The notes: generated by a model not told the origin, from the letters alone. A stretch of DNA of 64,000 bases from Paragordius varius (GCA_964247055.1 OZ176053.1:11098001-11162000); one strand, 5' to 3'. Shown: positions 126-50,026, numbered from the stretch's first letter. Numbers and translations are program-made.

Positions 126-3100
126 TTGAGTTGGTTCCAACATCACCATATAATTGCCTTTCGCATCGGCCGGCCTAACTGTGAGCCCAGTGTAATCTAC
201 TAAGAAAGGGAAATCGAAGAAGGGAGCTTCTGGGCAATTAACTATATAAACGTACCGTTTTCTATTGCAAACAAAAAAATGAAATTATTAGATATCTAGT
301 GATTATGTTATAAAATTATTTTAAGATGTTGTTAATATTGTCAACGCGAATGAATATTTATTATATATAATAATTTAAATTTTTATCATGTAGCGATAAT
401 TTTGAGTATAGTTTAATTTTGTAATTTAATTTAGATTATTATTTTATTGTTTTGTTGTTTCAAATATTTCGGTATATCTAAGATATATTACTTATGATAA
501 TAAAAAATAACTAGAGAGTCTTTGAATTCATTAATATACATGGATAAAAATATGATGCATTATTTACAACTAAAAAATAAAATTTTAAATAATATTTATA
601 TTGCTTACCTATTCAAAAAAATTGCATAAGTTCAAAATCCTAAAAATTATATACTGGAAGTTTAGACACACTCTAACAATATTTAAATATTCCACAATAT
701 ATAACATTATATCATACTATACATAGATTTATTTATGATTTTACGAAAAAAAATTAATTATACGAATTTCTTTAAATACGATAAATCACCATTAAGTAAA
801 TATATTATGTTTATTTAATTAATAAGATAATATGAAAAACTATTAACCATGATATGTGTGTGTGTGTTATAAGCTAGTCATGTAGTGACTCTTGGCTTTC
901 TCATAAATTAAAGTCCATCTTTGACGATCCTGTGATTCTCTCAACAATTGAGGAAAGTTCGGTTTGTTATTGATTTTAGCATGTCGATCCACCACTTTTT
1001 GGGTCGGCCCCTTCTGCGGGTGCCATATATTAACCCAAAAAGTATGTTTTTTCTAGCGAGTCGGATGCAGGATTTGACCAACATATTTTAGCTGTTTGAA
1101 GATTATTAAATTGTGAAGTAAAAATTCGGATTTGATGAGGTTGAGGATGTAATTGGAGATGTGGGCTTTCCAGGAGATTCTCAATATTTTCCGAAAGCAC
1201 CACATTTGAGAGTTTATGCGGGCTTTGTCAATGGATTTGCATATCCATGATTCGGACCCATAAATTGCCACGGGGTATATCATCGCCTTCAGGATGGCAA
1301 GTTTGGTTGGAAGTCTTATGACCGACGAGTTCCAAATTTTGGACAGATAACCCATAGTAGCACGTCCTAATGCTAGCCGTGCTCGTATGTCGGGATTCGA
1401 GCTACCGTCGGATGTAATTATGGAGCCTAAATATTTACAGTGGTTAGTTAGTTCGATGGTGGAGTTATGGATTGTAAATGGTAGTTGTGGAGCGTTTAGG
1501 ATTATTCTTTTAGATTTTGCTTTTTGTAATATTTTTCATATTAATCTATTTACATTTTATACTAAATCCTCTCATAATTGTGTTGCTATTTTGGGCTCCT
1601 ATGAATTCCCCAAATATCAAATGTTCTAAAAATTGGAAATCTTAATCTGCAGGGATACCAAAATTTGGACTTCACCAGTTAGCCATGAATAACCACACTA
1701 TTGCAATTATTGGATTATCAGAAACCCATATAATGAACAAGGGATATATAATTAATAACAACTATATATTATACCATTCCTGCCATCCTAATCTCAGAAG
1801 ATACGGTACAGGCATCATTATTCACAAATCTTTCGATTCGCTGACGAACCCAATTTTATCAACGATAGAATCATGAAAATTACATTCAATACACTTCCAT
1901 TGAAACTTAATTTGATCCAAGCATATGCTCCTACCAGCAATTCCTCAGAGGAAGATATTGAACAATTCTACTAGCTTCATAACACAGTCATAAACTGCAA
2001 CAAAAACGAAATAATAATAATATTATCTGGAGATCTTAACGCTACCCTAGGTTCTGAGGTTGAACGTAATGTCACTGGTGGATTCGGTCTTGGGAAAAGA
2101 AATCTCCGTGGTGACAAATTGATTAAATTTTGTGACCACAAACTTGCCATTACCAATAACTTTTTATATATTCCCCTCAGAAGAAGATATACGTGGGTTT
2201 CTCCAAAAAATACCCGTTCACAAATTGACTTTACCCTCATCCAACAAAAATGGCTCAAATTTATTATAGGAGCTAAAACTTTCCCAGGAATCGTAATAGG
2301 CTCCGATCATCAACTTCTAGCTATTAAACTTAAATTTAATTAAGTTAGGAACTAAATTACACAAAAAACTAAAAACCGCTTCGACTTTTCCAATGTTACA
2401 AGTGAATTTATATTCAAACTGAATACTTCCCAAAGTAATATCAATACTAATAATCTGAAAGTGAACAACCACTGGCATCAGACCTTGACTGCAATCAACG
2501 AACTAATACCCAAGCACTTCCCACTCCAACGAAAACATTCTAACAATCCTTGCCTCTCAAATGATATTGTCTTGGCCAATAAACGCAGATTGGCTAAAAT
2601 GAGCAACAACATTACTGATTACCGCACATTAAATACTCAATTCAAGATACAATCCAAGATTGATATCAATTTACACTACCTAACTATTTGCAAAGAATTA
2701 GAACTGGCTCACGCCAAAAGCCAGAACATATACCAAAAACTACATTTACTTGTCCCTCACAACTCCAAAAATTTGGGGAACATAAGCAACATGGATAATG
2801 TAATATTAACAAATCTAAATGAAATTATCAAACGCTGGGAAGAATTCAGTACTTCTCTTTATCATGTTGACTCTATTCCACATTCATCCATCGGCACATT
2901 CCTTAAAGCTTCTGAACTTGATCCCCCAATTTTACCTGATGAAGTTCAATACGCCTTAAAACAATTTTCATCCTCCAACTTAGGTTACAATGAAATTCTA
3001 CACACGATCCCCCTCTACTTCTTTACTGATCTTTTACAAAAAGTTTTTCAAACCTGTATTTGGCCGGATGATTGGATTAAATCTTTTCTCCTACCCTTTT

Positions 3101-6100
3101 TTAAAAAGGGAAAGCCCCGTCTCTGTCAGTACTATAGAATGATTGATATCACTAATAAACTATCCAAACTTCTTCTCAAGATTATACTCAAAAGAATCTC
3201 ATCCTCACTGGACTTTGAAATATCTGAGGTGCAGGCTGGCTTTAGAGCAAAGAGAAACACTGCTAATTACATAATAAATCTAAATACAATAATTCGAAGA
3301 TACAATGAATTTGGGAAAAGTCTATACTGATCCTTTTTAGACTTCAGTATGGCATTTGATACAGTCAACCACGATTGCCTATGGAACATATTACGATCCT
3401 CCGGAGTTTCTCCGCACATAACACTCTTGCTTCAATCGCTGTATTCTTCTCCGGTACGCCGACGACACCATCCTCTTGTCAGAATCCCACACGGATATGA
3501 CCTATCTTTTATATAATCTCACCATCGAAGCAAGTTTGATGGGTCTTAAGCTGAACCCAGCTAAATCTAAAATAATGATCCTAAACGCTCCACAACTACC
3601 ATTTACAATCAATAACTCCACCATCGAACTAACTGACCACTGTAAATATTTAGGCTCCATAATTACATCGGACGGTAGCTCGAATCCCGACATACGAGCA
3701 CGGCTAGCATTAGGACGTGCTACTATGGGTTATCTGTCCAAAATTTGGAACTCGTCGGTCATAAGACTTCCAACCAAACTTGCCATCCTGATGGCGATGA
3801 TATACTCCGTGGCAATTTATTGGTCCGAATCATGGATATGCAAATCCATTGACAAAGCCCGCATAAACTCTCAAATGTGGTGCTTTCGGAAAATATTGAG
3901 AATCTCCTGGAAAGCCCACATCTCCAATTACATCCTCAACCTCATCAAATCCAAATTTTTACTTCACAATTTAATAATCTTCAAACAGCTAAAATATGTT
4001 GGTCAAATCCTGCATCCGACTCGCTAGAAAAAACATACTTTTTCGGTTAATATATGGCACCCGCAGAAGGGGCCGACCCAAAAAGCGGTGGATCGACATG
4101 CTTAAATCAAAAACAAACCAAACTTTTCCTCAATTGTTGAGAGAATCACAGGATCGTCAAAAATGGAGAACTTTAATTTATGAGAAAGCCAAGAGTCACT
4201 ACATGACTAGCTTATAAGACACACACACACAAACTTTTAAGGACCTAATCAATATGTAATTAACCCAAAAAACCCACAAACCAAATCAAAAGCCTATTTG
4301 TTAATAATATATTTCGGGATAAAAAATTTTGGCTGGCCTCATACCACAATACATAGTACCAAATTATTAATAATTAAACCAACCATTTCATTAATGGTTA
4401 ATATCTCTTAAAAAATTATTCTATTAATGTGAACATATATGTATGTACGGAAAAAATAAAAATTTACGACCTAAAAATTTGAAAAGTGACAACATTTCTC
4501 AAAAAGGAAGACAAATCACAATAGTATTCCGTTACAAAAAAGGTTTTCCGTAATTTTCAACAATATAGTACATATACCTTGGTTCAATTGGTAAAGATAT
4601 CTCCCTCATATTCATATCACTCCCTAGACCAATCATTCGAGCTATCTGTCCAGAGTTTGGACCGCCTGCTATCACACAATGACTAAATTGAATCAGTTTG
4701 CGTCTCATAACACCATCCCCGTGATAATCTGCATTAATCTGCAAGTAACAGGCATTAATAATTGTCCGTAAAAAGACAATTTACTTATTATATAATCATT
4801 AATTTCTTTCGCTCAAGGAATTTTTATCTCAAGAACAAAAGGATTATAGCAATTTTATGGCTAGGGTATTCAATTTCAATTTGATCCAAATTTATTTAAC
4901 GTTTTCCGAAAATTTGTTTTCAACCATATATCAAAGAAAATATTATAAAAATTCTCATGCCCAACATTTGTGCAGGTATACTTATTAATAACTTTACTAA
5001 ACAGTGGTGTTTAAAAATTTGGTAAATGCAAAAACCGAAGGGTAAAAATAATTTTACAATAGCTTTGGAGGGAATGGTGGCATCAAAAAAGTTTTGTCGT
5101 TTAGCATCATACAATCGGGCCATGTTCATTTCCGTGAAACCGAGTAAACGCCCCTGAACAAAATGCGTATGGTAAAAGGCACAATAGTGTTTTAAGTGAT
5201 CCATTAATTTACAGGGATTATACCAACCCTCTTCGGACGAAGGACCTGTTTATGTACAAAATTGATTGGAATAAAATACGCATACGAGAGATATGTAAAT
5301 ATTTAGCATTATATTAATTTTCAAAGTTATTTTTAAAAACTGAATATATTCATTAATTATAAAAAGCAAAATAATAGTCATATATAACCATTTGTGAAAA
5401 AGGTTTAAAAAAAATTAAGAAAATCAAATGTTAAAGAGGACTATGATGTAAGAAAAAAAATTTAATTTATCATAAATGTGTGTAAATTTTTGAAAAATCA
5501 ATATTTTTATGAATTACGAGATTTAACTGAAAAAAAAACCATTTGTTTACTAACTATATGTGTACATCGTTTGTTTAATATGACTAAACTAACCTAAAGC
5601 GGCCAATTTAATGCCATGTGAATTGATCCAAGGATATTTATTTTCAAATTGTTGCGTGGTTAATATTTTAGATTTGCAATTATAATCCCTTCATTACATA
5701 TAAGAATATACCTTTGAATTTGATAATTCATTTTTAGTTGTTCGGCACCCTCGTCTGATGCCAAAACCAAATGTCCTTGAGAATGTAAATCGATGTCAAA
5801 GTCATTTATTATATGATCTAATTATAAATATAATAGTACCATTGATCGGTAATCGCAAATAATCAGACGTATTTTTTAAAAAATGAGAAGTAAAACGAGA
5901 CATTAGTATGTTTTCTGGTAGGGAATATGATTGTCTAAAACCACCCATTGATAGTGTAGAGGTTGATAAATTGTTCTAAAATTAAATTTATTATACATTT
6001 ATATCCTGATCAAGAATAGTAATTTTCATGTCTTTCTGTATAAAATATCTAAACCAGAAGGCGGTAGAAAGACCCATTAGACCACCGCCAATTATTAAAA

Positions 6101-31001: not shown

Positions 31002-31792
31002 TAAAATATAAATATTATATTTTATAAAAAAAATTTATATGTAAAAGCCATAATACGGATCAATGGAAAACATTAACGAAAAGTGCTATATAAGCATTCT
31101 CTTACCACGATAAGACTTAATATTACATTTAATTAATTCAAAATGTAAAAAAGAATTTGGTATCGCAATTTTCGGACCCAACTTAGTTATCCTTTAAACT
31201 ACCAATGTTTTTGTAACTGTATAAAGATAGGTCATTTGATTATTCCAATCATAGTTGTTCCGTGTAGTACAATATTTCTGGGCTAATTCATAAAACACAT
31301 TTAACAAGTAACATTTATTCCATGTCTCACAGGTTAACCTATAGATATTAGATACAATTTTTGTGGCAGTTTTAGTTTTTTAGGTCCTCTAAAAATTTGT
31401 CATTCATTTAAAATTTAGCTAACAGAAAAATAGCAAATTATGCGTATGGTAAAAAAAATTTCCGAAAAGATATTTTTAAAATATTAATCAAACTAGTATG
31501 GTAGGAAATTGATTTTAATAAGTGTAATATTTAAACTTTTTTAGAGAATCATGGTGATGCGGAATATATCACTTTCTTTTTAAAATTTGTTTGGTGCTAA
31601 TTGCCTATACTGATTTAATAATTTATCCCAATTTTAAATGAAATTTTATGGCAAAAACTAGTGATTCATCAAACATATCATATATTTTTTATATAAAACA
31701 TTATAAAAATTTATTTAACATTAATATAAATATTATACAATGGTAAAAAATCATTAACTAGATAATAATAAATCATTAAATTTCAAAATAAT

Positions 31793-33385
31793 CTATGTTG
31801 TGTAATGTGTGTGATGGTTGTTTGAAGTGAAAGGAAGATTGTAAGGTTGTGAGTAATGAAGGTGTTAGGTAGAGGAATGAATGGTGTAAGGTAAATCCAA
31901 AATTATAAAGATAAAAGTGGAAATGGTATGTAAATGTTGATTGGTAAAAATAGAGATATGTGTTGAGGTAGGAGAATAGAGTTGATAAAAAAAATCAAAA
32001 AGCTTAGAAAAATAAAAAGGGTTGATGTATAATGAGCAATGTAGTATGAGTTGTAAGTTGAGATGATAAATGGTAAGTGTTTGGGTTTTTGTGTGTGTTG
32101 ATGTGGGAGATATAAAAGAGTAATATAAAAAAAATGTATGGGAGTGTAGGTTAAAAGAAGCTGTGGAGATAAAGAATAGATGATGCAAAGATTGAAGCAA
32201 TAGAAGGTAAGATTTGAGGTGATGTAAGTGAATATTGTATTCACTGAATAAAAATAAATTAAAGAAAGTATTCAAAAGTACAGATGATATGATGAGGTAA
32301 GATGTGTATAAATGTGTCGTATAAAAATGTAGGTGGTTTGGTAATGAAGGTATTAATGGTGTATGTAAAGTAAGGGTTAAAAAGTTAAAAAATGGTTGTA
32401 ATATAAAAAAGTATCAAAAAAATAAAGATGATGTGATGAGATGAGATATGATGTGAAATGTAAGTGTAATGTGTGGTTTATAAAGTGTAGATGAGGTAAC
32501 GTAGGTATAAAAGCGTTGAAGTAAGGGGTTATAATATAAATCCAAAAATAGAATCGTCAGTTTTGTGTGTATGTATTAGATGAGGTGTAGTGTAAAATAA
32601 GTGGTGGATGAATCGGTAATGAAGATATTTAAGTTTTGAGGTAATGTAAGGGTTAAAAGTAATCAAAATAGTTGTACTATAGGAAGTATCCAAAAAAGAA
32701 TAAAATATGATGAGGTGTGATATGCAAGTATGATGTGTGATATATAAATTGTAGGGAATTGGTAACGAATGTATAAAGCAAAGGTTATAAAGTTAAAAAG
32801 TTGTAGATAAATATCCAAAAACAAAGATGATGTCAGGAAGTGATATGTAAGTATAATGTGTGGTATATGGTGTAGGTGATTTGGTTAAGAATGTATATGA
32901 TGTGTTGAGGTAAAGTAAGGATGGGAAAGGTAAAATAAATATTTGTAGTATAAAAAAGTATCCAAAAATGCAAAGATAAGGTATAATGAGGTGTGTAAAA
33001 TGTAAGATAAGTTGTAGGGTAAAATAAATGATGGGTGATTTGTTAAGCAGGAAGCAAGGATCAAAAAAATGTGATGAGGTGATGTGATGTGATAGTGCAA
33101 ATAAATTGAAAAATGTTTTAATATAAGATGATGATAAAAAATAAATATATAATATGTAAGGTGATAGGTGTGGGAGGGTGTGTGTGTGTGTAAGGTATGT
33201 GGTGTGTATGATTGGGTGAGTAAATGTGCATGTTGATATGAGAGAAGTGGAATAAAAGTAGTAGAAGAAATGTAAAATATATAAATTACAAATTTATATA
33301 TATTATATATACATATATAAATAGATATATAAATGTAATATAAATATAAATGTTGAATGATTGTTATTGTAATATAAGGGCCAAT
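31793..33385. repeat. Strand-asymmetric (G/A/T-rich, C-depleted on plus) degenerate tandem array, copy 1
   Basis: For example 32341-32400 has 16 G and 0 C. An anchor resembling gtatccaaaaa recurs near 32265, 32410, 32538, 32684, 32810 and 32957, alternating about 145 and 127 bp apart. Confidence 0.85.
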
Positions 33386-33527
33386 CATTCATTCAAACAT
33401 CAATCTCCCAATACGTCGACGCTATATTAAGAAATAAATTAATATACTGATCTAGATTTTATAATTATTGACCCTTTTTGGGGTATTATAAAGCTGCGTC
33501 TTATTGATAAAACATGCGATATAATTT

Positions 33528-35680
33528 TTAAATAAAAGAAAAATAATATTGCAATTTACTGTATGTTTCGCGCAACAAACACTTTTCCTCCCCACATGTG
33601 CTATCCTCGCACTCCATTAAATTTATTTCTGGAAAGCCTGATTCAGAAGGCGGTTCTTCACATGGTGATGGTGTCCATGTAAAATACTGAAGTGTTTCAC
33701 AGAAAGTAACTCTTTTTGGAATGTTTGGTTCTATAATAGGAATCAATTTTTGTTAGATTTTAAGAGATATTAAGTGATAATGATATATTTATTTTTACAA
33801 CAGTTGATTAAAAAAATTTAAACAATTTTGAGATTAAAGATATGCTTATATATCGTATATTTTTTACCCTAGGATTACATATTAATTTTTTGATTACCGT
33901 TTGATTCGACCAGAACACCATCTTTCTCGCTTGTGTTATCCTCGCATTCAATTGAATTCACTTCTGGCCAGCTAGGATCTGGATAAAAAAGTTCTCCAAT
34001 AGGTGAGACAGGTGTCCAACAAAAAAACTCAAGCTCGTCATTGAAAACGACCCTTTTTGGTATAAGTGGTTCTAATTTTACAAATTTATAATTTTTACAA
34101 AGGGTTGGTGCATTAGTTGACTAAATTAATAATAATAAATCATTAAATATGGAAATATAATAGTATTTTAAATACCGTTTTCGCATACATTTGGGCTTTT
34201 CATATTTGATTTTTTCTTTTGAGACGCATCAGGCCTTCCAGAACCCGCTAATTTAAAGAAATTCATATAAATAAAATAACGGTAAATCAAAAGATTTAAA
34301 GTAATTGTTTTAAGTATTAATATAAAATAAAGTATTATATTATTTTTTTGTCAAATTATTATGTTGAGAAAAATCATTTAAAAATAAATTTATATACCAT
34401 TCAAAGCTTCTTCATCGGGCGCTCCAAAACAAGGAAATACACGCATCAACCATTTCAATATTTCTGTTAAAATAATTATTATTAATTTAATTTGTCTAAA
34501 AAGATTAAATTTCTTGGTCTTTAGCTATAAGTGTATATTAGGATTAATATAAAATAAAGGTTATAAGATTATTTTTATTTTTTTTTAATTTATATAAATG
34601 TCTTTTTAACGATTTACCTGTAAATTTGTTATGGATGGACTTTTAATTATCTATGGAAATTCTATTATTTAGGCAAAAATATTAAATTAAAAAGCTTAAT
34701 AACTGACGCAATGATTTTATTTATATCACAAACACAGAAGCAAATCAGCTACCAAAAGGTTTTAACATTAATTATAGTATATTTATTGGTTATAAAATAA
34801 GTAGCTTTTCAATTCTAGAATTAATGAGGTTTTTAACATGATTGTTTTATGAGGGGTTATCGATAAAATATATATAGTAACGAAAAACAATAGGATTGAC
34901 ATAAAGCCCTTTAATTTAATATAAAATCTCATAATTTTAGCGGTCATAATCAATTACACTTAACCAATTTTCTAAATAGTGATTGCAAATTTTCAATGGT
35001 CTAAAATTAATTAAATAAAAGGAACGAATGTCTGTATAAAATTATTTAGCTATATCATTATCTGACCTATTCGTTTTGCAATTATGATAATAAACTAATA
35101 CAAATCTATGAAATTGGGTTTATTGCTTATTTAAAGACTTAGGCTATAATACGATGAATGGATTTAAGAAAACAAAACTTTGGATTTAGCAAACCTCAAA
35201 AACACTATTTGCATAAATTAAAAAAATTGCATCATGTATGTTTTGACTTTTTAAAGCACTTAGTCAATTTAAAAATTGAATAAAAGCGCATTTCATGTTA
35301 TATTTTATAACCTAATTATTTATAAACAGCTGTCCTGCGGATTTCGTTCATTACATTTATATTTCTTATATGGCGTTTTACCGGCATTATTGAAAACCCG
35401 TCTTTCAGTGCTAACATTTTGAAATTTAAAAAACGGAACGGAACCCGAAATTTGACATATTATATGAGATATTTTATAGCTCAAGTAAATGTAGGCGATA
35501 TGACCATACATATATTAACATAAATGAATATATAATCAACATATGTAATGCCCTTTTCAAATTTATAGTACCAATTGACCAATTGCATGTGTATATATGT
35601 CAAAATACAAATAATTGCAATTTACCTGTTCCAATCACTCTTTTGTCGCAATTTTTCTTCTTTTTACTCCAAAAATTCAT
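33528..35680 (-). CDS. Unknown small protein with two RVxF (PP1-docking) modules, copy A, at least 5 exons
   Basis: Exon 1 is 35680-35626, followed by exons near 34460-34398, 34245-34175, 34120-33898 and 33730-33528. Product MNFWSKKKKNCDKRVIGTEILKWLMRVFPCFG...EPLIPKRVVFNDELEFFCWTPVSP...EPNIPKRVTFCETLQYFTWTPSP. The exon 3/4 junction needs an alternative donor in this copy. Confidence 0.72.
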
Positions 35681-36021
35681 GATATTTTTATAATCAAATA
35701 AGTTTTAATGAATAAAATGAGTTTTGTAATTCGATTGTTGATTTATTAAAATAGAACAATGTTTAATTAATTTTATTATGGCATTCTAATATATAATGCT
35801 ACGTACGCTATTGATTTGGTTTATAGAATTGTACTATTATGAAAATAAAAATAGGTACATAATTGAATTAAAATCTAAAACATCCATATATTTCATTGCA
35901 AATTAATCAACAAGGTCTTACTGTTTTGTCTTAAAGGTTTCATGTTTTTAAAAATAAAAATCAACCATATTAGCAACGGCATCCTTCTATTCATACGTCC
36001 AAAATAAAAATTGTTGTTTGA

Positions 36022-36576
36022 TACTTCAAATCAAAGAGGGGTATCTAAATACCAAAGACTATTTTTAAGTTGATATCTTTGAAAACTACTGAACGAAACG
36101 GTCCCTATTTTATGCTTCTATCATTGTATAAATAAGCGATATTTTAATAAAATATAGTTTTGAAAAAAAAATCCCATATCAAACTACTTCGAAGCCATTT
36201 TTATTTTCACCATTTTTGCAAAATATCGTGTTATTTAATTTTTAGGCTAAAAATGATAATTTTTTATTTAAATCACGTATAACATTGATAGAAACAGAAA
36301 AAGTGAGTTATTTTGTATTATTTTATTAGCTAATGTACACATGTCATGTTGACTAAATTTTTACCTTGAGGTTTTACCTAAAAATAGGTTATGTCAAGTA
36401 TTTTTATGTGAACTTCTTTATATTTTTCGGTTCATATCAAAGTTCTCTAAGTGCAAATTTTTGCCATGGTTTCTATTCATTCCATATTTTTTGAAATATT
36501 TAATTTTAAACAAGCCCGGGATCCAAATACCCCAATTTAAATCAAAGGACTGAAATGAATGTGTTGTATCCAAGTT
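36022..36576 (-). mobile_element. piggyBac-type MITE, inverted copy with degraded termini
   Basis: Reverse complement of 36719-37277 along its length. TTAA sites degenerate (ttga, ttat). Confidence 0.75.
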
Positions 36577-36718
36577 TTATGATGTATCTCAGCCAAAAAA
36601 ATGTATGAAAATGTTTATTAAAAAGGAGTTTTATTTGTGCATGCACCCCAAGCGTCCATTTATATATATGTGGGACATTTTGTTATCCAGATAAAGGGAA
36701 AAGTTAATTCTAGATTAA

Positions 36719-37277
36719 CACTTGGATACAACACATTCATTTTAGTCCTTCGATTCAAATTGGGGGAGTTAAATACCCCAGGCCTGTTTAAAAATAAATA
36801 TGGAAGGAATCCAATCCACGGCAAAATTTTGCACTTATATAATATTAATAAACCGAAATATATAAAAAAATTTATTAAAAATACTTGATATTACTTATTT
36901 TAAGCTAAAATCGAAAGGTAAAAGTTTGGTCACCATGACATGTGTGCACTGGTAAAATTAAAAAATAATACAAAATAAACCGCTTCTTCTATTTCTATCA
37001 ATGTTAAATGTAATTTAAACAAAAAATAGCTTTAATTTTACCCATAAAATTAAATGAGAACGATATTCTGCAAAAATTTTGTAATATAAAAATGGCGTCA
37101 AAGCAGTTTGACATAGAACAAAACAAAATTTTATTTAGATATTTTGGCATATTTATAAAATTTTTATCAGGATAGAAGCATAAATTTAAATCGGTACCGT
37201 TTCATTCAGTAGTTTTTTAAAAATCTTAAATCAAATTTAGTCCGGGGTATTTAGATACCCCAATTTGAATCGAAGTA
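36719..37277 (+). mobile_element. piggyBac-type MITE, 559 bp
   Basis: TTAA on both sides (36715-36718 and 37278-37281). Starts CACTTGGAT, like piggyBat-type ends, and ends ...CGAAGTA. Inverted subterminal motif CTTCGATTCAAATTGGGGG at both ends. No ORF. Confidence 0.82.
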
Positions 37278-37809
37278 TTAATAATAATTAATGCCTGTTT
37301 TTTCTGTTACTTAAAGAGTATATTTTAACCATAAATTTTATTTACCCAATACAATCCACGCTATGATCCATATTTATTATCCAATAACTGCAATTACCAG
37401 GAAGTTTTATTATTACAAAAATTAAAAGTATAATCTAAAAATTACACAAAAAAGCGCGGCCGATAAAATTTATTTGATTTTTCTTTTAAATTCAATGATT
37501 TTCATGAGATGGGAAAAATAATGTTTTAGCCTAATTATCCTTAATTGTATTATGCAGCATTATTATTAATATTACCCATAACACATTAAAAATAGGTTTA
37601 ATTAAAAATAGTGCATCTTAGCGGAGCTCTATTTTACGAAATATGGATAATTTTTATATAAAATTTTCAAGAAAATAGAGTTAATACTAAAAATATTTTT
37701 CAAGGGTTTCATATAAAATATACGGTATTTTCGCCTTTAGGATGCTAATTAAAAAAAACTTATTTATACATTACTGTATGCATAGGATATCTCTTCAGCG
37801 GTTAATTTG

Positions 37810-38290
37810 AATAAATGAATGAATACCAGCGTACTTGAATATTCAACTTTTTGCTGGACTTCACGGACAAATTTTTTGTAGGCTGATCTGTCTAGGGTAT
37901 TAATCAAATTGGAGATTGTAGGGCGGGTGTGGCCTATTGATTTTTTTGTCCATCTTTTTTTATCTGCCTCTTTTTTGCTTACGCTTTACCAAACCCAGTA
38001 TGATCTTTTCTCCAATCTATTGTTGCGGATGACATGGCCAAAGTAGCCTCGTCTCCGTTTTGTTATCATTTGGAATAATGTATGGGTAAATTATATTGCG
38101 CATCCATTCATTAGGAATTTTGTCCGTTAATTTAGTAGCATGGGCCAGCAAGCTTGTATATAATATTTAGGTCAGTGTTTTTGCAAACCCAGCTTTCAGA
38201 ACCATAAGTTGCGAGATATGATAAAATTTAGGATTTCATTTTAGTAGCTTTGGTTATTTTGTGTGACTACTATATCAAAATAGTCTAAAT
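37810..38290 (-). mobile_element. Degenerate 3' fragment of a second RTE-clade LINE
   Basis: The minus strand reads TYGSESW, YFGHVIR and KRGR.KKRW with stops, followed by an (ATTC)n-like tail. Boundaries approximate. Confidence 0.75.
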
Positions 38291-39725
38291 TTTTATATTA
38301 CTGGATACAGTTAAAACCCTTATTCTATTTGTACGGTTTCGTAAGGCGACGTTTTTTAGGTACTACCTAACATCCAATAAAAACGCTAAGCTAAATATTT
38401 TGCATTTACCTAGGCTAAAACCATTCTCAATTGGATATGTCTCATAATTTGGGCAAATAACTACTTCTTCGGCACCTATTTCTTTGCATAATATAGCGGC
38501 TAATAATAGGGCCTACCTTAAAAATTATTCGATTTTAAAATACTATTATTGAATTTGAATGGGCCTACATGTTTTCCGGAAAATTGTCTCAAAGACACAA
38601 TCTTTTGGGACTTTAATTTTTTTGAAACCCTATTTGTATACGGGGGGCGCAACATAGAGCCTAATTCAAAAAAAAAGTCTCGAATGTCGGTGAGTTAATT
38701 AAACTTTCCACTTTTGAGTCATGACATCAGAATAACGATTAAAATTCTGTTTTAAAATGCTTTTAAAATTGATTTGCATGTAAGGAACAATATGTTTTAG
38801 CAACAGTTTTTCTATATACAATTTCTGGAAACAACCGTTTTGTGGCCCTGATTCCGGTTCAACTATTTCAAGTATCGTCCGGGATATAAGAGCGTTAATG
38901 CAATATAACTTGCATTTAATATTACTATTTATTTGCAATTATGATTTCCTCGGACATTTAAACTTTTTAATATAGAAAATGTAGAATGCCCGAAAATGTT
39001 AAAAAAATATTTTAAATTTAAAAATAATTTTTGAGTTTTATTGTTGAACAATTTTTTTGCATTTATTTTCATTGTTATGGTTGGAAGGAGTTTGGTTGGA
39101 GTTAGACATAAAATATGTGGAAATTAATTAAGAAGAATATTTAAATTTAAAGTTCTGCACTTTTAAATTCTTTTTTTGATAATATTTAGTAAGTCGGGTT
39201 TTTACATGAATGCCATTAACACAAACAAATCATATAGATCAATTTAAATTTGCTTGAGAATTGCAGACTGCACTGCATATGAATCAAATTTAAAACACTT
39301 AAATCAAATAAATTCCATGTTATTTGATAAAATAAAAGTTAGTGTATGTAAAAAATATTCATAAATAATTATTTTTCTCAATATTTATTTTTAAAATGAC
39401 TGAGTCACCCAATCTATGAATATGTATATTAAATATTTGAATGTGTGCTGGAGTAATAATTGAGTTGAATATCCAATATTTTTTGGCGATAATCAAATTT
39501 TTTTGTAAAAACAGCCCTCGCAAAAAAACGTGGCCACCCATTATATATATAATAACATCTAAAATATAAATTAAACCTAAATTCTACAAATAAATTACCA
39601 TGCTATTAAAATTTATGATTTTTAAAATAATGGAAGAAATGCCAAATTATTTTAATTGATTCTACCTCTAAATCCAAAACAGATGGTTTTAATAATCTTC
39701 TACAAATAATTTATTTTATAGAATA

Positions 39726-40450
39726 CTAGCGTGAATCTCGTGCTGCTACGCAGCCCGAGGAAGTCCTTCGGACTTCTGGGGGGGGGGGGGGGGTTCGAAG
39801 TTTGGATTTGAATGGGTCTACCGTTTTTCCTGTAGATCACAAAGCCAGCATTTTCTATTTTTATAAATATATAGATTACCATAAATAATGTTTTAATATC
39901 CATATATCTTTTAACATGCTATACATATGATAGATACTCCTTACTCAGCAGCTATCATCAAAGAAACGCTTGACTAAAATTTTTGCCTTTTAACAGGGAA
40001 TACGTGGAATCTTTATTGAATTTTTACGGTCTCATACCTAGGGCGAAAAATCGATTTAAAAAATTATTTTTGTGGACTTTGTTTTTTGAAAAAGGTGGCA
40101 TTTTACGGGGGGAGCGGGTAAAAAGAGGGCCTAAATCAAAAAAGTGACTCGACTATGTTCGGCGCAATCGAAAATAAGTAAACAAAAATTATATTTAAAA
40201 TTGAATGGTCCAACACGTTCTCCGGAATATTGTCTCAAAGACACGATTTTGTGGACTTGTGTTTTCAAAAAAAAACCGATTTTCACACGGGGTGGGCCCG
40301 AACTGGGGGCCTATTTCAAAAAAAGGGCGAAGCTATTGTCAGGGCATTCATTAATGATTATATTTTTTCGAAGTTTGGATTTGAATGGGTCTACCGGTTT
40401 TCCTGTACCAGATCACAAAGCCAGCATTTTCCATTTTTATAATATATAGA
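39726..40450 (-). mobile_element. Non-autonomous Helitron, 725 bp
   Basis: On the minus strand A|TCtatatatt starts at 40450. Ends with hairpin CTCGgGCTGC-gta-GCAGCaCGAG, then attcacgCTAG|T (39726). Shares the family 5' core. Confidence 0.88.
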
Positions 40451-41187
40451 TTTTATGTGTAAAAGCGATAATACGGATCAATGGCAAACATTAATTAAAA
40501 ATTTTATATTAAGTATTCTCTTATCACGTTTATTTAAGACTTATTATTACTAAATATCTCAAAATGTGAACAAGAATTTTAATACGGTAATTTTCGGACC
40601 CAATATAATTATGTCCTCATCAATATTATATTTTTTCATTGGAAGATAGTAAATTTCGTCTATTCAATTGTCAAGTACAATATTTCTGGGCTAATTCATA
40701 AAACGCATTTTACAACTACCTTTTATAGTAATCCATGTCTCACAGGTTAACCTATGGAGATTAGTTATAATTTTTGTGGTAGTTTTGATTTTTTAAGTTC
40801 TCTAAAAATTGTCATTCTAAAATTTAGCCAATAGAAAAATAGCAAATTATGCGTATGGAAATCTTCCGGAAAAGATATTTTTAATTAAAACTAGTAATGG
40901 TAGGAAATTGATTTTTATGTTTGTAATATTTAAATTTCCTTTTTAAAAACATAGGGTGATGCGGAATACATCATATTTTTTATTGGTGCTAATTGCCTAT
41001 CACACTGATTAAATGGTTTATCCCAATTTTCAATTAAATTTTATGGCAAAAACTAGTGATTCATCAAACATATCATATATTTTTTATATAAAACATTATA
41101 AAAATTTATTTAACATTAATATAAATATTATACAATGGTAAAAAATCATTAACTAGATAATAATAAATCATTAAATTTCAAAATAAT

Positions 41188-42730
41188 CTATGTTGTGTAA
41201 TGTGTGTGATGGTTGTTTGAAGTGAAAGGAAGATTGTAAGGTTGTGAGTAATGAAGGTGTTAGGTAGAGGAATGAATGGTGTAAGGTAAATCCAAAATTA
41301 TAAAGATAAAAGTGGAAATGGTATGTAAATGTTGATTGGTAAAAATAGAGATATGTGTTGAGGTAGGAGAATAGAGTTGATAAAAAAAATCAAAAAGCTT
41401 AGAAAAATAAAAAGGGTTGATGTATAATGAGCAATGTAGTATGAGTTGTAAGGTGAGATGATAAATGGTAAGTGTTTGGGTATTTGTGTGTGTTGATGTG
41501 GGAGATATAAAAGAGTAATATAAAAAATTCAAAATGTATGGGTGTGTAGGTTAAAAGAAGCTGTGGAGATAAATGATAGGTGATGCAAAGATTGAAGCAA
41601 TAGAAGGTAAGATTTGAGGTGATGTAAGTGAATATTGTAATCACTGATTAAAAATAAATTAAAAAAAGTATCCAAAAGTACAGATGATATGATGAGGTAA
41701 GATGTGTATAAATGTGTCGTATAAAAATGTAGGTGGTTTGGTAATGAAGGTATTAATGGTGTATGTAAAGTAAGGGTTAAAAAGTTAAAAAATAGTTGTA
41801 ATATAAAAAAAGTATCAAAAAAATAAAGATGATGTGATGAGGTGTGATATGTAAGTCCAATGTGTGGTTTATAAAGTGTAGGTGATTTGGTAACGTAGGT
41901 ATAAAAGCGTTGAAGTAAGGGGTTATAATATAAATCCAAAAATAGAATCGTCAGTTGTGTGATGTATTAGATGAGGTGTAGTGTATAATAAGTGGTGGAT
42001 GAATCAGTAGTGAAGATATTCAAGTTTTGAGATGTAAGGGTTAAAAGTAATCAAAATAGTTGTAATATAGGAATTATCCAAAAAAGAATAATATATGATG
42101 AGGTGTGATATGCAAGTATGATGTGTGGTAAATAAATTGTAGGGAATTGGTAACGAATGTAAAAAGTAAAGGTTATAAAGTAAAAAGTATGTCAGGAAGT
42201 GACATGTAAGTGTAATGTGTGGTATGTGTAGGGGATTTGGTTAAGAATGTATAAGATGTGTTGAGGTAAAGTAAGGATGGAATAGATGAATAAATATTTT
42301 TAGTATAAAAAGTATCCAAAAATGCAAAGATAAGGTATGATGAGGTGTGTAAAATGTAAGATAAGTTGTAGGGTAAAATAAATGATGGGTGATTTGTTAA
42401 GGAGGAAGCAAGGATCAAAAAAAATGTAATGAGGTGATGTGATAGTATAAATAAATTGAAAAATGTTTTAATATAAAATGATGATAAAAAAATAAATATA
42501 TAATATGTAAGGTGATAGGTGATAGGTGTGAGAGGGTGTATGTAAAGTATGTGGTGTGTATGATTGGGTGAGTAAATGTGGATGTTGATATGAGAGAAGT
42601 GGAATAAAAGTAGTAGAAGAAATGTAAAATGTATAAAATACAATTTATATATTATATATATATATATATAGATATAGATATATAAATGTAATATAAATGT
42701 TGAATGATTGGTGTTGTAATATAAGGGCCA
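41188..42730. repeat. Strand-asymmetric C-depleted degenerate tandem array, copy 2
   Basis: Paralog of 31793-33385 with the same composition and anchors. Confidence 0.85.
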
Positions 42731-42875
42731 ATCATTCTTTTCATACATCTATCTCCCAATACGTCGACGCTATATTAAAAAATAAATTAATAAATTGAAC
42801 TAACTTTTATAATTTATGACCCTTTTTGTGGTATAATAAAGCTGCGTCTTATTGATAAAACATGCGATATAATTT

Positions 42876-45081
42876 TTAAATAAAAGAAAAATAATTTTGC
42901 AATTTACTGTATGTTTCGCGCAACAAACGCTTTTCATCCCCACATGTGCTATCCTCGCACTCCATTAAATTTATTTCTGGAAAGCCTGATTCAGAAGGCG
43001 GTTCTTCACATGGTGATGGTGTCCATGTAAAATACTGAAGTGTTTCACAGAAAGTAACTCTTTTTGGAATGTTTGGTTCTATAATAAAGGAATCAATTTT
43101 TGAATGGGGAGAGATATAAAATTAGCGTGATAATTGATGGTGCATTATTTTTACAACTGTTGTTTAAGAAAATTTAAACAATTTTGATGTTTACTGATAC
43201 ATTTAAAAATATTTCGTAATTTTTACCCTAAGATTACATATTAATTTTTTATTACCGTTTGATTCGGCCAGAACACCATCTTTCTCGCTTGTGGTATCCT
43301 CGCCTATTGAATTCGCTTCTGGCCAGCTAGGATCTGGATAAAAAAGTTCCCCAATAGGTGAGACTGGTGTCCAACAAAAAAACTCAAGCTCATCATTGAA
43401 AACGACCCTTTTTGGTATAAGTGGTTCTAATTTTACAAATTTATAATTTTTACAAAGGGTTGGTGCATTAGTTGAATAAACTAATATATTAAATCATTAA
43501 GAACTATAATAGTGTTTTAAATACCCGTTTCACATGCATTTGGGCTTTTCATGTTAGACTTCTTCTTTTGAAACGCATAAGGCTTTCCTGGACCCACTAT
43601 TAATAATAAAATAACGGTAAAACAAAAAAAGATTTGCAGTATTTGTTTTAAGTATTAATATAAAATAAAGTATTATATTATTTTTTTGTCAATTATTATT
43701 TTAAGAAAAATCATTCGAAAATAATTTATATACCATTCAAAGCTTCTTCATCCTGCGCTCCAAAACAAGGAAATACACGCATCAACCATTTCAATATTTC
43801 TGTTAAAAATATATATTATAATTAATTTATTTTGTCTAAAAAGATTAAATTTCTTGGTTTTTCATTAAACTATAGGTATTTTAGGGTTATTGGAAATAGA
43901 ATAAAGGTAATAAGATTATTATTTTATTCCATTTTGTAATTTACTTAACTCTCTTTTTAATGATTTACCAGTAAATTTGTTATAGATGAACTTTTAATTA
44001 TCTATGTTTCTATATTCTAGACAAAAATATTAAATTAAAAAGCTTTTAACGGACGCAAAGATTTTATCACAAAGACAGAAGTCACAAATATTTTAAATTA
44101 CAGCTACTAAAACGTTTAAACATTAATTTTAGTATAACTTTTATTAGTTATAAAATAAGTAGCTTTTCGATTCTAGAATCAATGAGGTTTTTAACATGAT
44201 TGTTTTATGTGGGGTTAGATTAAATATATATAGTAACGAAAAACAATAGGATTGACATTCAAGCCCTTTAATTTAATATAAAATCTCATAATTTTAGCGG
44301 TCAAAATCAATTACACTTAACCAATTTTCTAAATAGTGATTGAAAATTTTCAATGATTTAAAATTAATTAAATAAAAGTAACGAATGTCTGTATAAAATT
44401 ATTTAGCTATATCATTATCTGACCTATTCGTTTTGCAATTATGATAATAAACTAGTACACAAAAATCTTTGAAATTGGGTTTATTGCTTATTTAAAGACT
44501 TAGGCTATAATACGATGAATGGATTTAAGAAAACAAAAAACATTTATGCTAATTATCTAAAACATTGTAAGCTTGAATGGTTGGATTAACAGACTTTGGA
44601 TTTAGCAAACCTCAAAAACACTATTTGCATAAATTAAAAAAATTGCAACATGTATGTTTTGACTTTTTAAAGCACTTAGTCAATTTAAAAATTGAATAAA
44701 AGCGCATTTCATGTTATATTTTATAACCTAATTATTTATAAACAGCTGTCCTGCGGATTTCGTTCATTACATTTATATTTCTTATATGGCGTTTTACCGG
44801 CATTATCGAAAACCCGTCTTTCAGTGCTAACATTTTATTTCAAAAACGGAACGGAACCCGAAATTTGACAAATTATATGAGATATTTTGTAGCTCAAGTA
44901 AATGTAGGCGATATGACCATACATATATTAACATAAATGAATATATATTGAATATGTAAGGCCCTTTTCATTTATGGATACAATTGTATGGTATTATATG
45001 TCAAAATACAAATAATTGCAATTTACCTGTTCCAATCACTCTTTTGTCGCAATTTTTCTTCTTTTTACTCCAAAAATTCAT
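42876..45081 (-). CDS. Unknown small protein with two RVxF modules, copy B (all junctions phase 1 and consistent)
   Basis: Exon 1 is 45081-45027, followed by exons near 43800-43735, 43590-43525, 43478-43256 and 43079-42876. Frame open throughout. Differences from copy A include an in-frame indel (NSIECED vs NSIGED). A further short last exon is possible. Confidence 0.78.
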
Positions 45082-46224
45082 GGTAATGTTTTGATTTTTA
45101 TTCAAAATAAATTTTAATGTATAAAATAAATTTTGTAATTCGATTGTTAATATTTTAAAATAGAACAGGCATTCTAAAATTTATACAATGTTACACTATT
45201 GATTTGGTTTATAGAATTAGACAATTATTTAAATAAAAATAGGCATACAATATAAAATATATCATCTCTATATGACGTTGAAACTTAATCAATGTAGCTT
45301 AATATTTTGTCTTATGTTTTTATAAATATTTAAATGAACTATAATAGATGAAATTTTCGTTACCAAGGGCCTAAAAAGTTTATAAAAAGATGTATTTCGA
45401 AATACACCCGAGTGCGTACAGATACGACCTCGGACATCCAGATAAGAGGGACCTAATTTAACTTTAGGTTTTAATATTTATTACCCTAAGTGCCGTTACC
45501 TTAAAAACTAGGTTTTATCTATAATTATAAATTTAATTAACCCAATACAAGTAATAAGGTGTTTCAAAAGTGTTACAAAAGTGTATATAAGTGTCCAAGA
45601 TGTGGCCCGCGAAAAATTTCAGATTGCTAAATAAAGTCTACAATTATGAAATTATGGTCGCAAAATCTTGATATTTATTAAATTAATTTTCTGAGTTGTC
45701 TTTCTAATTAGCAATAAACTAGCAAAAATTAGTGAAATAAATAGTGGTTATTTTTTGGCATTTTTTCACAGGCTTATGTTTAAAATGTAATAAATATTTA
45801 TTTATGCCTCTATATTTTTATAAAGGCTTTTTGTATTAAATAAAAAATGGTGTACAATGCTTTTGACTTTTTTTAGAGCACTTAATAATTTGGTAAATTA
45901 AATAAGAGTTTTAACCGCCTACTTCATATTTTAAATATTAAAATATTTTTTAAACAGCTGTTGCACATTGTTTTTTACACTTTATGACGACAATTTTCGG
46001 ATACTCAAAACCCATCTTTCACTTTTCTTTTATTTTAAGTTTTCCAAAGCAAAGCGGAACCCAAAATTATCATGATTTATATTGTAAAGTTTAAGTAAAC
46101 ATAGAGACCTGGTTTCTAATGACCATATATTAAATTAGGTTTAATTGAAATTATGATGGCCCTTTTTAATTGGGTAAATCAATTGTATACAGAGATATGT
46201 TAAAATCCAATAATTGCAATTTAC

Positions 46225-46276
46225 CTGTTCCAATCACTCTTCTTTTGCAATTTTTCTTCTTTTTCCAAAAATTCAT
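46225..46276 (-). CDS. Third copy of exon 1 of the RVxF gene (MNFWKKKKNCKRRVIGT), with no downstream exons of its own
   Basis: ATG plus an intact G|GTAAAT donor. Flanking intron and upstream sequence are homologous to copies A and B over about 45790-46440. Confidence 0.6.
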
Positions 46277-48207
46277 GACAATGTTTATGTTTTTTTATTT
46301 AACAAATAAGTTTTATTGAATAAAATAAGTTTTGTAATTCGATTGTTGATTTATTAAAATAGAACACGTATATATGATTTATATGACATTTCTAAAAATT
46401 ATATGTTAACCCATTGGTTTAATTTATAGAATTATATTAAATAAACTTATCGTACACTGGACACTTACTAAAAGTAGCATATACTTTTGTGTGAACATTT
46501 GGGAAATTCCTAATAATTAAAATTAGGAATAAGGTATGGTCAGCCTTCCATTGATCCTGCCATGGAATTTGGTATATCCAAGTTTTTACCTATAAGGTTT
46601 TAGTTCTAAGATGTATGAAAGGTTTGCATTTATTTTATGGTTTTTTATGTTGTTTTTAAAAGATCCGAATTATACCTCAAAAAAAATGCTGTTGTCAATA
46701 ATACTGATTTAGATGCGTGATTTAAAAAAATAAGTTATAAAAAAAAATACGGCTCGCTACTATTTATAGATGCTAGCCAAACTCATTACTGTTTAAAAAT
46801 TGGCTATTGATGCGGCAGCACTTACTCATTTTTATGGTATATTTTAATACTATAAAGATCATATTTTTGATCTTATATTTTTATATAATTTTTTTGATTT
46901 ATAAAAGTTTGTATATACAGTCGACAAAAAATCTGATGTTTCAGGATTAGTATGGTGTTTTGGGTTTGGGTCTTACAAGTAATTTGATAAATTTTTATCT
47001 TTGAAGAAAACTGGCTCATAAATATAACATGGCAATTACGCACATTTTTGTAAATAAGTATTTGGTCAAAAGTTATATGCTCTACCTAAATATCATCAAA
47101 TTATAAAGTACATATAAAGAGAATAAACAATATTTTGATGAAATTTTAATTTTAAGTGTGACGAAAAGTCCTTGCCTTTAAAATGGGGGAGTTCTCCTAA
47201 AATAAACGCGAAAATGCAGAATTGTAAGTTAAGAATAAATATTCTAAATTATAACATAAAAAAATGCTTTTTCACAAAATCATAATTTTTGCCTAAAAAT
47301 TTAATATACTGTAAAATTTTCGAGATTTATGGTATTTGGAAGTAATAGGGTAACGGTAAATAACGTTTTAATAATTAAAACGGTTTTTTATGTAATTAGA
47401 TGATGCTAAACATTTTTATCAAGAAAAAATTTAAATTTAGTGTTTGTTAACTTGCAAATTTGGGTAAAATTTGAACACTTTATATTTAGCATATATTTTA
47501 AAAAGAACGAATATTATAAATAATAATCGAGATTGAAATGTTCAAATAAAAATTATCTAGAAATAGTGTTTTTGTCATATAATAAAAGCGTATTTATATG
47601 GTTTGCATCTTACCTCAATACAGGATCAAGTATTCTTCAAATATTTTGTTAAAATTAAATTTTTGAATACTTATTTCCCAAATATTCCCTTTTGATGCAA
47701 TACTAGCACATCTTTATTTTAATTGCAAAATCCGGACATTTTGTCTTTATTACAACTTATATTTACAAGAGGGAAAAAATTTTGCTATTTTGAGGTCCAA
47801 CAAATTTTTTTTTTAATATTATTTTGTTTTATGTGTTATAATATTTTTTAGCAACATTTTTCACCAAAAAATTATTTAAAACTTTTTTTTGATATGCACT
47901 TACCACAAAGTGTAAATAACTTTGGGCCAAACCAAAAGCAACCTGATAATACCGATACATCTTATCAGAATATATGTATTTCAGGATTTTTTTCTTTGGA
48001 CATTGTGTTAGATAAACATCAAGATAAAAGACAAATAGCATAAATTTTTTTATTTTTTCCATATATATAATCGCCGTTTTTTTCTTTTAATATTATTTTT
48101 AAATTTGTCATTAATATCTTGAAGTATTTAGAGTATATAATAAATTACACATCTGCTGTGTCTTTTATTAAACAAAAATCTGGATTTTCACACTCTCCTC
48201 TGCTAAC

Positions 48208-48619: not shown

Positions 48620-50026
48620 TTAAAAATAATTCCATATGGATGAAAAAAATGTTTTAATTTTACTCTTTATTCTTGTGTCAGTAAATATTGCAATATAACA
48701 CAATACTGCTACAAATAGTGAATCGAGGTTTTCTAAATAACCATCGATTTTTATGAGATTTGTTATTTTTTTTCTGTATAATTCTTCATAGTTGTTTATT
48801 TCAGAAGGAATTACGTTCCACACATGTTTGTCTAAACAAGTAACGTTAATATATGAGGACTGATTATCCATGATTTTGCATAATTCTGGCATATCGATGA
48901 GTAGTTTTTCGGTTTCTTTGTTATTGTATTGCCTAGTAAGATAAATTTTGGGGGCAAAAGTTCTTATATAATGTTTTCTCATAAAAATTGTAATTGATGT
49001 TGGAGTGTAGCAGAGCAAAAATAATAGGAGGTACAAAATTGATGAGATATTTTTAATAACATAACCTCTGATATGTTTTTTTCGATTACCTACTCCCCTA
49101 ATATTGGAATTGTTTATGGATTCATTCATATCATAAATGGATTGCCTGCTTACATTACCAATGTCGCTGATTTTATTAGTTTTTATATTTGGTTTTTGTA
49201 TTATAGATAATTCTTTATTTTGGACCAATTTATGGTCAAAAAATGCATTCTCTGCTCCATGTGATGACGGTGTCACACGTCTTATTTTCATTTTAATTTG
49301 TTGTATGCGTTCTTTTTTAGATAAAAATTTGCTTAAAGATATTGTGATATTTACTACCAGGAACAGTATTATAAGAGACGGTATCATGCAAAACAATACT
49401 TCACTTATAACTTCCATGTTTATTCTCCAGGTATCTGTTAAACTTGGTAAACCAATTATTTGACGGTAATACATAGTTCGTTGTTTTTTAATATCCCAAC
49501 ATTCCAGAAATTCGTAGTATTTGTCGGTCATAAAAGAAAATACAGTGATAGCTCCAATTAAGACCCAGGGTAAAAGATGTTTATACTTTCGACTCTGATA
49601 CTTGATTAGACCGTGGGGATTATTGATAGATAGATAACGGTTGTAAAGGAGAAAACATAGCAAAACACCCGACGTATCATTGAAAATAGAATACAGAATC
49701 CATTGATACCGTGTTATAAATACTAACCATCTCCTGTTTTCCACAAAAATTTCGATCCTAGTATCATGAATCAACATTGATAGCAATCGCAAAGAATCTA
49801 TTATACATCCAATCATATTACATATCATGATCCAAGATAAAAAATAGTCATGAAGTGTTGTACTTTTCAACCGCTTTATAATAAGGAGTACGGTTAAATT
49901 TGCAAAAATGCCTGTTAACACCAACGGTGTTGTAATATAGCGTTCGATAATGTTGAGAATGGGATCAAAATCGATCTCAGTAAGATTAGATGAGCAGATA
50001 GTTTTAACATTTAGATTCTCTGACAT
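48620..50026 (-). CDS. Orphan rhodopsin-like (class A) 7TM receptor, intronless, 468 aa
   Basis: Seven hydrophobic segments: TM1 GIFANLTV, TM3 YNRYLSINNP (DRY-like), TM5 CMIPSLII, TM6 FLLCYTP (CWxP-like). Long ICL3 and ECL3. Confidence 0.85.
   Translation of the reverse strand: MSENLNVKTICSSNLTEIDFDPILNIIERYITTPLVLTGIFANLTVLLIIKRLKSTTLHDYFLSWIMICNMIGCIIDSLRLLSMLIHDTRIEIFVENRRWLVFITRYQWILYSIFNDTSGVLLCFLLYNRYLSINNPHGLIKYQSRKYKHLLPWVLIGAITVFSFMTDKYYEFLECWDIKKQRTMYYRQIIGLPSLTDTWRINMEVISEVLFCMIPSLIILFLVVNITISLSKFLSKKERIQQIKMKIRRVTPSSHGAENAFFDHKLVQNKELSIIQKPNIKTNKISDIGNVSRQSIYDMNESINNSNIRGVGNRKKHIRGYVIKNISSILYLLLFLLCYTPTSITIFMRKHYIRTFAPKIYLTRQYNNKETEKLLIDMPELCKIMDNQSSYINVTCLDKHVWNVIPSEINNYEELYRKKITNLIKIDGYLENLDSLFVAVLCYIAIFTDTRIKSKIKTFFSSIWNYF

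Follow-up and report, generated by a model that had tools for sequence, protein, structure and literature searches.

Paired RVxF-type modules in an orphan gene family of probable PP1-docking proteins

The 64,000-nucleotide stretch of Paragordius varius DNA considered here (hereafter, the window) is an AT-rich segment (~28% guanine plus cytosine) of a 110.5-Mb eukaryotic assembly (contig C4:11,098,001-11,162,000), and its minus strand carries two neighbouring copies, A and B, of a small gene encoding two modules reminiscent of the RVxF motif for docking on the phosphatase PP1. A preliminary description of the locus had interpreted these as a new PP1 subunit. The locus therefore raises the questions of whether the genes are real, whether they have known relatives, and whether the modules would engage the catalytic subunit (PP1c) or owe their appearance to something else. 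We conclude that the orphan gene family is real, that its products are probably PP1-docking proteins, and that the earlier interpretation is partly supported.

A family of genes with repeated docking-type modules

Each copy comprises five coding exons, amounting to 189 codons in copy A and 188 in copy B, and all four introns are of the GT..AG type and in phase 1. Exons 4 and 5 are mutually homologous (46% identity) and share the module EPxIPKRV[V/T]F-x5-[FY]F-x-WTPxSP, in which the hydrophobic pair (FF or YF) stands at +6/+7 from the F of the motif. This bears out the preliminary description as regards two RVxF-type modules per copy, a hydrophobic pair five residues on and conserved TP/SP sites. 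Moreover, all of the peptides quoted in it were recovered from the minus strand where it had placed them: KRVVFNDELEFFCWTPVSP starts at 34057 in copy A and 43412 in copy B, KRVTFCETLQYFTWTPSP at 33716 and 43064, WLMRVFPCFG at 34452 and 43788, and KKKKNC at 35665 and 45066, with a third copy of the last at 46264. Its end points are likewise those of the coding regions, with the copy A stop codon at 33528 and the copy B ATG at 45081. Missing from it was exon 3 (Table 1), the fifth coding exon, which is conserved in the paralogues on contig C3.

The two copies in the window had been taken for an isolated duplicate pair, but they belong to a larger set: a six-frame search of the assembly found 12 two-module genes (eight on contig C3, at 1.61-1.94 Mb, two in the window and two on contig C5, at 7.40-7.42 Mb), and a profile search of the genome gave at least seven single-module hits in a cluster at C4:3.38-3.46 Mb, with expect values (E) from 2.5e-4 to 7e-2. 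For the C3 paralogues, module identity is 45-57% at the protein level, and all eight genes retain, for both module exons, the TAG| acceptor and the G|GTAA donor. The full five-exon, phase-1 structure is readable in one of them (L005), including homologues of exons 1-3: the end of exon 1, [KR]RVIG[TQ], is common to L005 and the window copies, and the L005 homologue of exon 3 encodes VECPPGKPDTIQKKSNIKGRNGCKN. A homologue of exon 2, LKKWW.R.F.CFGK...DAL.G, is present in six of the C3 paralogues. As to the C-termini, seven of the eight C3 paralogues (L003-L010) end in ...RETYSKF-stop, and the window copies in ...SFI-stop. The pattern of a class I PDZ ligand, S/T-x-hydrophobic, accommodates both -SKF and -SFI; L003 and the C5 gene depart from it, however, and a C-terminus of this type, or one resembling the type 1 peroxisomal targeting signal (PTS1), was rejected as not consistent across the family.

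The single-module genes resemble the two-module genes in several respects: their module, EP[KR]KSVTFSEVNQYHSWTPVSP, is homologous and follows the same phase-1 acceptor; their N-terminal exon, GWRKYLCRISFCCFKK, is similar to LKKWWNRLFSCFGK of the two-module genes, both being of the W-x-R-x-F-x-CF type; and their downstream exons are acidic. They differ in having one module rather than two, in C-terminal exons with acidic Trp repeats, and in that their own motif matches a stringent six-residue consensus for PP1 docking. The cluster extends over C4:3382839-3458663 (loci L051-L056 and L026). Judged by these shared features, the two-module and single-module genes form one superfamily of at least 19 genes.

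Nothing outside this genome was recognized as a relative. With E up to 10 allowed, a Pfam hmmscan returned no family for any of six translated exons, and in particular not PF10488 (PP1c_bdg); a word-index protein search with a 154-residue L005 read-through frame covering both modules found nothing; and a profile built from 22 modules found nothing among PDB sequences (E up to 10) and no relatives among 1.84 billion representatives, although this library of called open reading frames (ORFs) could miss split genes of unsampled relatives. The 12 marginal hits of the latter search (E from 2e-5 to 8e-4) proved to be artefacts, namely, bacterial repeat ORFs (FNPRSPCGER), bacterial 'FSWTPS' repeats and one acidic low-complexity stretch. 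In metagenome contigs, 125 pattern matches yielded no confirmed case. The nearest ESM-Atlas clusters by language-model features do carry Pfam PP1c_bdg, with scores of 0.80-0.82 that lie below the reliable range and serve as a lead only. By these searches, the family appears to be species-restricted, an orphan outside all known families.

We take the family to consist of real protein-coding genes, so far unannotated, because splice sites, frames and phases are kept across the paralogues and because the ratio of replacement to synonymous differences per site (pN/pS), pooled over the 28 pairs of the eight C3 paralogues, is 0.40. In exons 1, 2, 4 and 5, copies A and B are identical at 483 of 495 positions (97.6%), whereas the introns are ~93% identical; the ratio of replacement to synonymous substitution rates (dN/dS) proposed as a check in the preliminary description is 0.46, on 13 differing coding positions only. 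That description also held that the modules were unchanged while the introns had diverged: the motif cores are indeed identical, but the module exons as a whole are not, exon 4 differing by seven substitutions and a 3-nt deletion that preserves the frame in copy B, and exon 5 by three replacement changes. Exon 3 is 80.6% identical, with length and frame kept, and its differences amount to 6.5 over 13.5 synonymous sites versus 6.5 over 55.5 replacement sites; its higher divergence fits patchy gene conversion between older duplicates. An apparent internal TAA in four C3 module-2 hits proved, on inspection, to be the stop codon with which the match ends.

The motif itself is the best-conserved part across 30 paralogous modules. 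In an alignment of 22 modules, E1, P5, K6, F10 (the F of RVxF), F17 (the second residue of the hydrophobic pair), P21 and S22 are invariant, and N11, T20, P23 and three Glu residues are nearly so, the constant core being P-K-[KR]-(x)-V-x-F-N-x-x-x-x-[FY]-F-x-W-T-P-x-S-P. The loose RVxF consensus, [RK]-x(0,1)-[VI]-{P}-[FW] (PMC4794898), is matched by 28 of the 30 modules extracted genome-wide, including all four in the window, and a module with EAKKCVTF fits it by eye (it would be the 29th). Moreover, the single-module family retains KKSVTF...YHSWTPVSP. In the 128,000 residues of the window's six-frame translation, a composite of motif and aromatic pair, [KR][KR][VI]x[FW]-x5-6-[FYW][FYW], has four matches, one for each of these modules, which is more than chance would suggest. 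Two further PP1 motifs were considered and set aside: a SILK-type motif where exons 1 and 2 join (the window copies have EILK, which is unlike [GS]IL[KR], and the C3 paralogues GLKK) and the MyPhoNE motif, to which no fit was seen by eye.

Modelled docking on PP1 and comparison with known partners

The genome contains four hits to the PP1-type N-terminal domain. One of these, L024 (L024:706-1797, minus strand; C2 ~8.878 Mb), is an intronless PP1 paralogue of 363 residues that matches human PP1α in the PDB with E = 1e-149 and looks like an extra PP1 isoform of the retrogene type; it has a Ser/Gly-rich N-terminal extension of ~45 residues. L024 was chosen for modelling, since the canonical PP1 gene, L021 (C1 ~5.003 Mb), is split by introns. 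Within the latter (L021:1534-1896), a 24-nt GT..AG intron (GTATTCAATCAAATAATTTTTTAG) interrupts the invariant KICG|DIHG metal-binding motif, and the genome therefore truly has ultra-short spliceosomal introns beside kb-sized ones.

Modelling of a PP1 complex, as the preliminary description had proposed, was carried out with residues 60-350 of L024 and module 1 of copy A, in three runs and with three controls. The module was placed in the RVxF groove with a score of 0.84, whereas the controls scored 0.00-0.01 (the best, 0.01); in calibration of the score, 51 of 78 solved complexes attained the mark, as did 2 of 108 mismatched pairs. The runs share at least 46% of their contacts, and the predicted local distance difference test (pLDDT) value of the partner is at least 50 (50-54). 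The confident interface comprises partner residues 6-21 (KRVVFNDELEFFCWTP) and stops at residue 21. Allowing for a constant offset of 43, the contacted PP1 residues correspond to human I169, D242, L243, R261 and 288-299, with partner residues 14-17 touching the equivalents of 293-297 in the model. These are the residues of the established RVxF groove (Egloff 1997) and of strand β14. It is alongside this strand that the hydrophobic-pair motif of known partners adds a strand of its own (PMC7599070). The model, then, points to a likeness to PP1 docking, as distinct from binding.

The closest parallels are spinophilin, PNUTS, PPP1R15A/B and Phactr1, which carry the RVxF-ΦΦ(-R-W) string (PMC7599070). 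The modules described here likewise place a hydrophobic pair five residues after a basic RVxF-type motif, in a context of predicted disorder, and, if the model is correct, their V and F occupy the RVxF groove and the pair lies along PP1 β14. Sequence homology to these proteins is lacking, however, and the window family has neither the Arg motif nor the Trp motif at the known spacing. It also differs in packing two tandem modules into ~190 residues, and its binding to PP1 is a prediction. The comparison with Ki-67 and RepoMan (CDCA2) made in the preliminary description holds at the level of the motif, but not as homology or family membership. The likeness would consist of KRV[ST]F and, after it, an acidic/Leu stretch, a hydrophobic pair and proline-directed sites close by, whereas neither protein was recovered by the profile or PDB searches, and pair spacing, size and architecture differ. 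The PF10488 proteins (PP1c_bdg; GADD34/PPP1R15 and viral ICP34.5/DP71L-type) are likewise short PP1 recruiters with RVxF and a hydrophobic pair. By our reading, the eIF2α-recruiting element that lies downstream in that family is not visible in the sequences described here.

A further parallel is offered by phospho-switchable RVxF sites of the KNL1 type, in which phosphorylation at or near the motif inhibits PP1 binding (PMC6715587). Ser or Thr is found at or beside x in the family (KRVTF in the window, K[KR]TVRF in module 2 of the C3 genes and KKSVTF in the single-module genes), and the upstream basic residues would suit a basophilic kinase. In contrast, window module 1 (KRVVF) has no Ser or Thr there, and the downstream TP/SP sites are of another, proline-directed type. 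At the N-terminus, a Cys following the basic/aromatic stretch is conserved in [FS/P]CFG of the window and C3 genes, and the single-module family has CCF. The exons show no evident transmembrane segment.

Arrangement of the locus

The duplicated units are 4.6 kb each and 89-93% identical by blastn self-comparison (89.5-92.6%), with one gene per unit (Table 1). They had been described as a tandem duplication. The two copies stand, but a unique spacer of ~4.8 kb, with repeats, separates them, and they are neighbours rather than strictly head-to-tail. A third copy of exon 1 was located through the similarity of 35595-35830 to 46195-46433 (81% identity, blastn); it may have been left behind by a further duplication or may serve as an alternative first exon.

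Table 1. Features of the duplicated genes, in window coordinates
Feature	Position	Strand	Remarks
Duplicated unit A	31266..35855	-	gene copy A and ~2.2 kb of 3' flank, including C-poor array; blastn
Copy A exon 1	35626..35680	-	ATG at 35680; encodes MNFWSKKKKNCDKRVIGT + 1 nt; donor G|GTAAAT; 100% identical to copy B
Copy A exon 2	34398..34463	-	phase 1 to phase 1; encodes EILKWLMRVFPCFGAPDEEALN; basic/aromatic segment, conserved Cys
Copy A exon 3	34176..34247	-	phase 1 to phase 1; encodes AGSGRPDASQKKKSNMKSPNVCEN; basic linker
Copy A exon 4 (module 1)	33898..34071	-	encodes EPLIPKRVVFNDELEFFCWTPVSP..., acidic tail at end
Copy A exon 5 (module 2)	33528..33730	-	encodes EPNIPKRVTFCETLQYFTWTPSPCEEP...RETYSKLQYYFSFI; stop TAA 33530-33528
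Duplicated unit B	40674..45243	-	carries gene copy B
Copy B exon 1	45027..45081	-	same sequence as copy A exon 1
Copy B exon 2	43734..43799	-	encodes EILKWLMRVFPCFGAQDEEALN
Copy B exon 3	43525..43596	-	encodes VGPGKPYAFQKKKSNMKSPNACET; frame and length as copy A
Copy B exon 4 (module 1)	43256..43426	-	3-nt deletion relative to copy A
Copy B exon 5 (module 2)	42876..43078	-	includes stop codon
Third exon-1 copy	46221..46275	-	encodes MNFWKKKKNCKRRVIGT + 1 nt; GT donor intact; 1.2 kb upstream of copy B exon 1

An array of ~1.5 kb, nearly free of C on the plus strand (45 C per 1593 nt), starts ~140 nt 3' of each gene copy, inside the duplicated unit (31793-33385 and 41260-42748). A compositionally similar array is found 3' of a single-module gene (L026), and blastn detected no homology between the two. 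The spacer contains a dispersed repeat (36418-36888) that also occurs near the PP1 gene on another contig (L021:219-390), with similar translations (NTPGLFKNKYGRNPIHGKILHLYNINKPKYIKK and LKLNSLKYGRNRNHGKNLHLYNSNKPKYIKK). A second spacer repeat, at 38549-38698 and 40144-40449, has translations with LNGPT..PE.CLKDTI.W and is probably a short mobile element. Elsewhere in the window, two adjoining ORFs of 289 and 183 residues (2461-4027, plus strand) have, by eye, the appearance of a broken reverse-transcriptase region from a non-long-terminal-repeat retrotransposon, and an intronless ORF of 468 residues with several hydrophobic segments (48620-50026, minus strand) resembles a gene of the seven-transmembrane receptor type.

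Competing explanations and implications

On balance, we lean towards the view that copies A and B are members of a lineage-restricted family of small (~190 residues), largely disordered PP1c-docking proteins. A number of observations weigh against it. The proposal of a new PP1 subunit draws strength from the conserved motif and the modelled docking geometry, but neither PKRVVF nor PKRVTF of the window matches the stringent consensus [KR][KR][ACHKMNQRSTV]V[CHKNQRST][FW] (PMC4794898), both having Pro at the first position and module 1 also Val at x. The five-residue Meiselbach form fits KRVTF and not window module 1, and both K[KR]TVRF of C3 module 2 and KKSVTF of the single-module family match the stringent six-residue form. 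The loose pattern has 382 matches among the six-frame residues of the window and, according to PMC4794898, occurs in ~25% of all proteins; in the two C5 genes, module 2 no longer has the motif (KNDIF in the one read); and the RVxF-ΦΦ-R-W string is incomplete, lacking its Arg and Trp elements: no Arg lies downstream of the hydrophobic pair in window module 1, and there is no Trp at the known spacing. The support for binding is one in silico model, of module 1 on a divergent PP1 paralogue; no alignments entered the folding, and where complexes of a class have been solved, the predictor may reproduce them as learned. Moreover, the sequence comparisons are between paralogues in one genome. As for expression, two read runs guessed to be RNA (X4 and X6) contain none of the stretch, three others (X5, X7 and X8) have next to no words in common with it, and no spliced joints were seen. 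The best-covering runs (X1, X2 and X3) are of unrecorded type, and X1, which has depth in every bin, covers introns and exons equally; contigs of 'organism B' are essentially identical to the window or carry the copy-B states.

The ubiquity of the loose pattern and the mismatch to the stringent one would also suit a family that is real and expressed and in which the RVxF look is incidental, the modules presenting instead a site for another docking partner, a proline-directed kinase substrate or Pin1/WW site at WTPxSP, or a small Cys metal-binding fold. We regard this as somewhat unlikely. It has in its favour that WTP-SP is invariant to the same degree as the RVxF residues, that the tails have conserved Cys patterns (e.g. 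ECKGCTCDY...C in module 2), and that no known PP1-binding family is matched by sequence. However, the basic residues, V/I, F and aromatic pair occur together at the right spacing in 28 of 30 modules from two very divergent families, the composite motif has zero background in the window, and it is exactly these residues that the model docks in the PP1 groove, while the controls fail; the low pLDDT of the partner, in turn, argues against an autonomous fold. Far less probable, in our estimation, is that the copies are non-functional, being untranscribed or decaying duplicates in segmental duplications or repeat-rich DNA whose frames are open merely through youth. The lack of RNA support in the runs examined is in keeping with this, as are the weak A/B dN/dS (given so few differences), the setting of the units among dispersed repeats with a C-poor array, and the existence of an orphan exon-1 relic. 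Yet frames, splice sites and phases survive in paralogues at 45-57% protein identity, and even in the single-module family; the pooled pN/pS of the C3 pairs, the mainly synonymous differences in exon 3 and the in-frame deletion in copy B exon 4 likewise speak for genes under constraint.

If the proteins do dock on PP1c, exons 4 and 5 would contribute one docking module each: PKRVVF or PKRVTF would fit the hydrophobic RVxF groove, and FF or YF, five residues on, would add a strand alongside PP1 strand β14, with the proline-directed WTPxSP sites directly after the pair and the acidic, Cys-containing tail beyond. The N-terminal exons, through their basic/aromatic segment with a conserved Cys (LK[KW]W.R.F.CFG), may hold the protein at a membrane, perhaps by lipid anchoring. 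We infer that members of the family would bind PP1; they may either target or inhibit it, and may engage two PP1 molecules or gain avidity for one. By analogy with known switches, regulation through phosphorylation of the T in KRVTF and of the TP/SP sites is plausible, because Thr or Ser is present at or beside x and the invariant TP/SP sites lie at the edge of the modelled interface. The palmitoylation, bivalent binding and germline role put forward in the preliminary description are guesses.

A bolder version, which we consider distinctly doubtful, is that duplication of a symmetric phase-1 docking exon (RVxF, hydrophobic pair and phosphosites), set behind a lipid- or membrane-anchoring exon, gave rise to a lineage-specific superfamily of small PP1 regulators not seen before, with at least 19 members, and that the two-module members are bivalent, phosphorylation-switchable PP1 clamps or scaffolds at the membranes of a parasite-like worm. 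If true, PP1 regulatory diversity would here have arisen de novo and expanded by tandem gene and exon duplication. PP1 owes its specificity to partners that number in the hundreds, are mostly disordered and have little in common apart from short docking motifs; to our knowledge, the origin of new partners is poorly documented outside model organisms. Should PP1 be bound, the family would be a clean example of a young group of regulators grown by exon and gene duplication with the docking motif held constant, and it would offer natural variants: one versus two modules, Thr or Ser at regulatory positions, and a copy without the motif. Should PP1 not be bound, it would warn how persuasive a conserved RVxF look-alike can be when joined by a confident complex model. 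Either way, the genes merit addition to the gene set of this genome.

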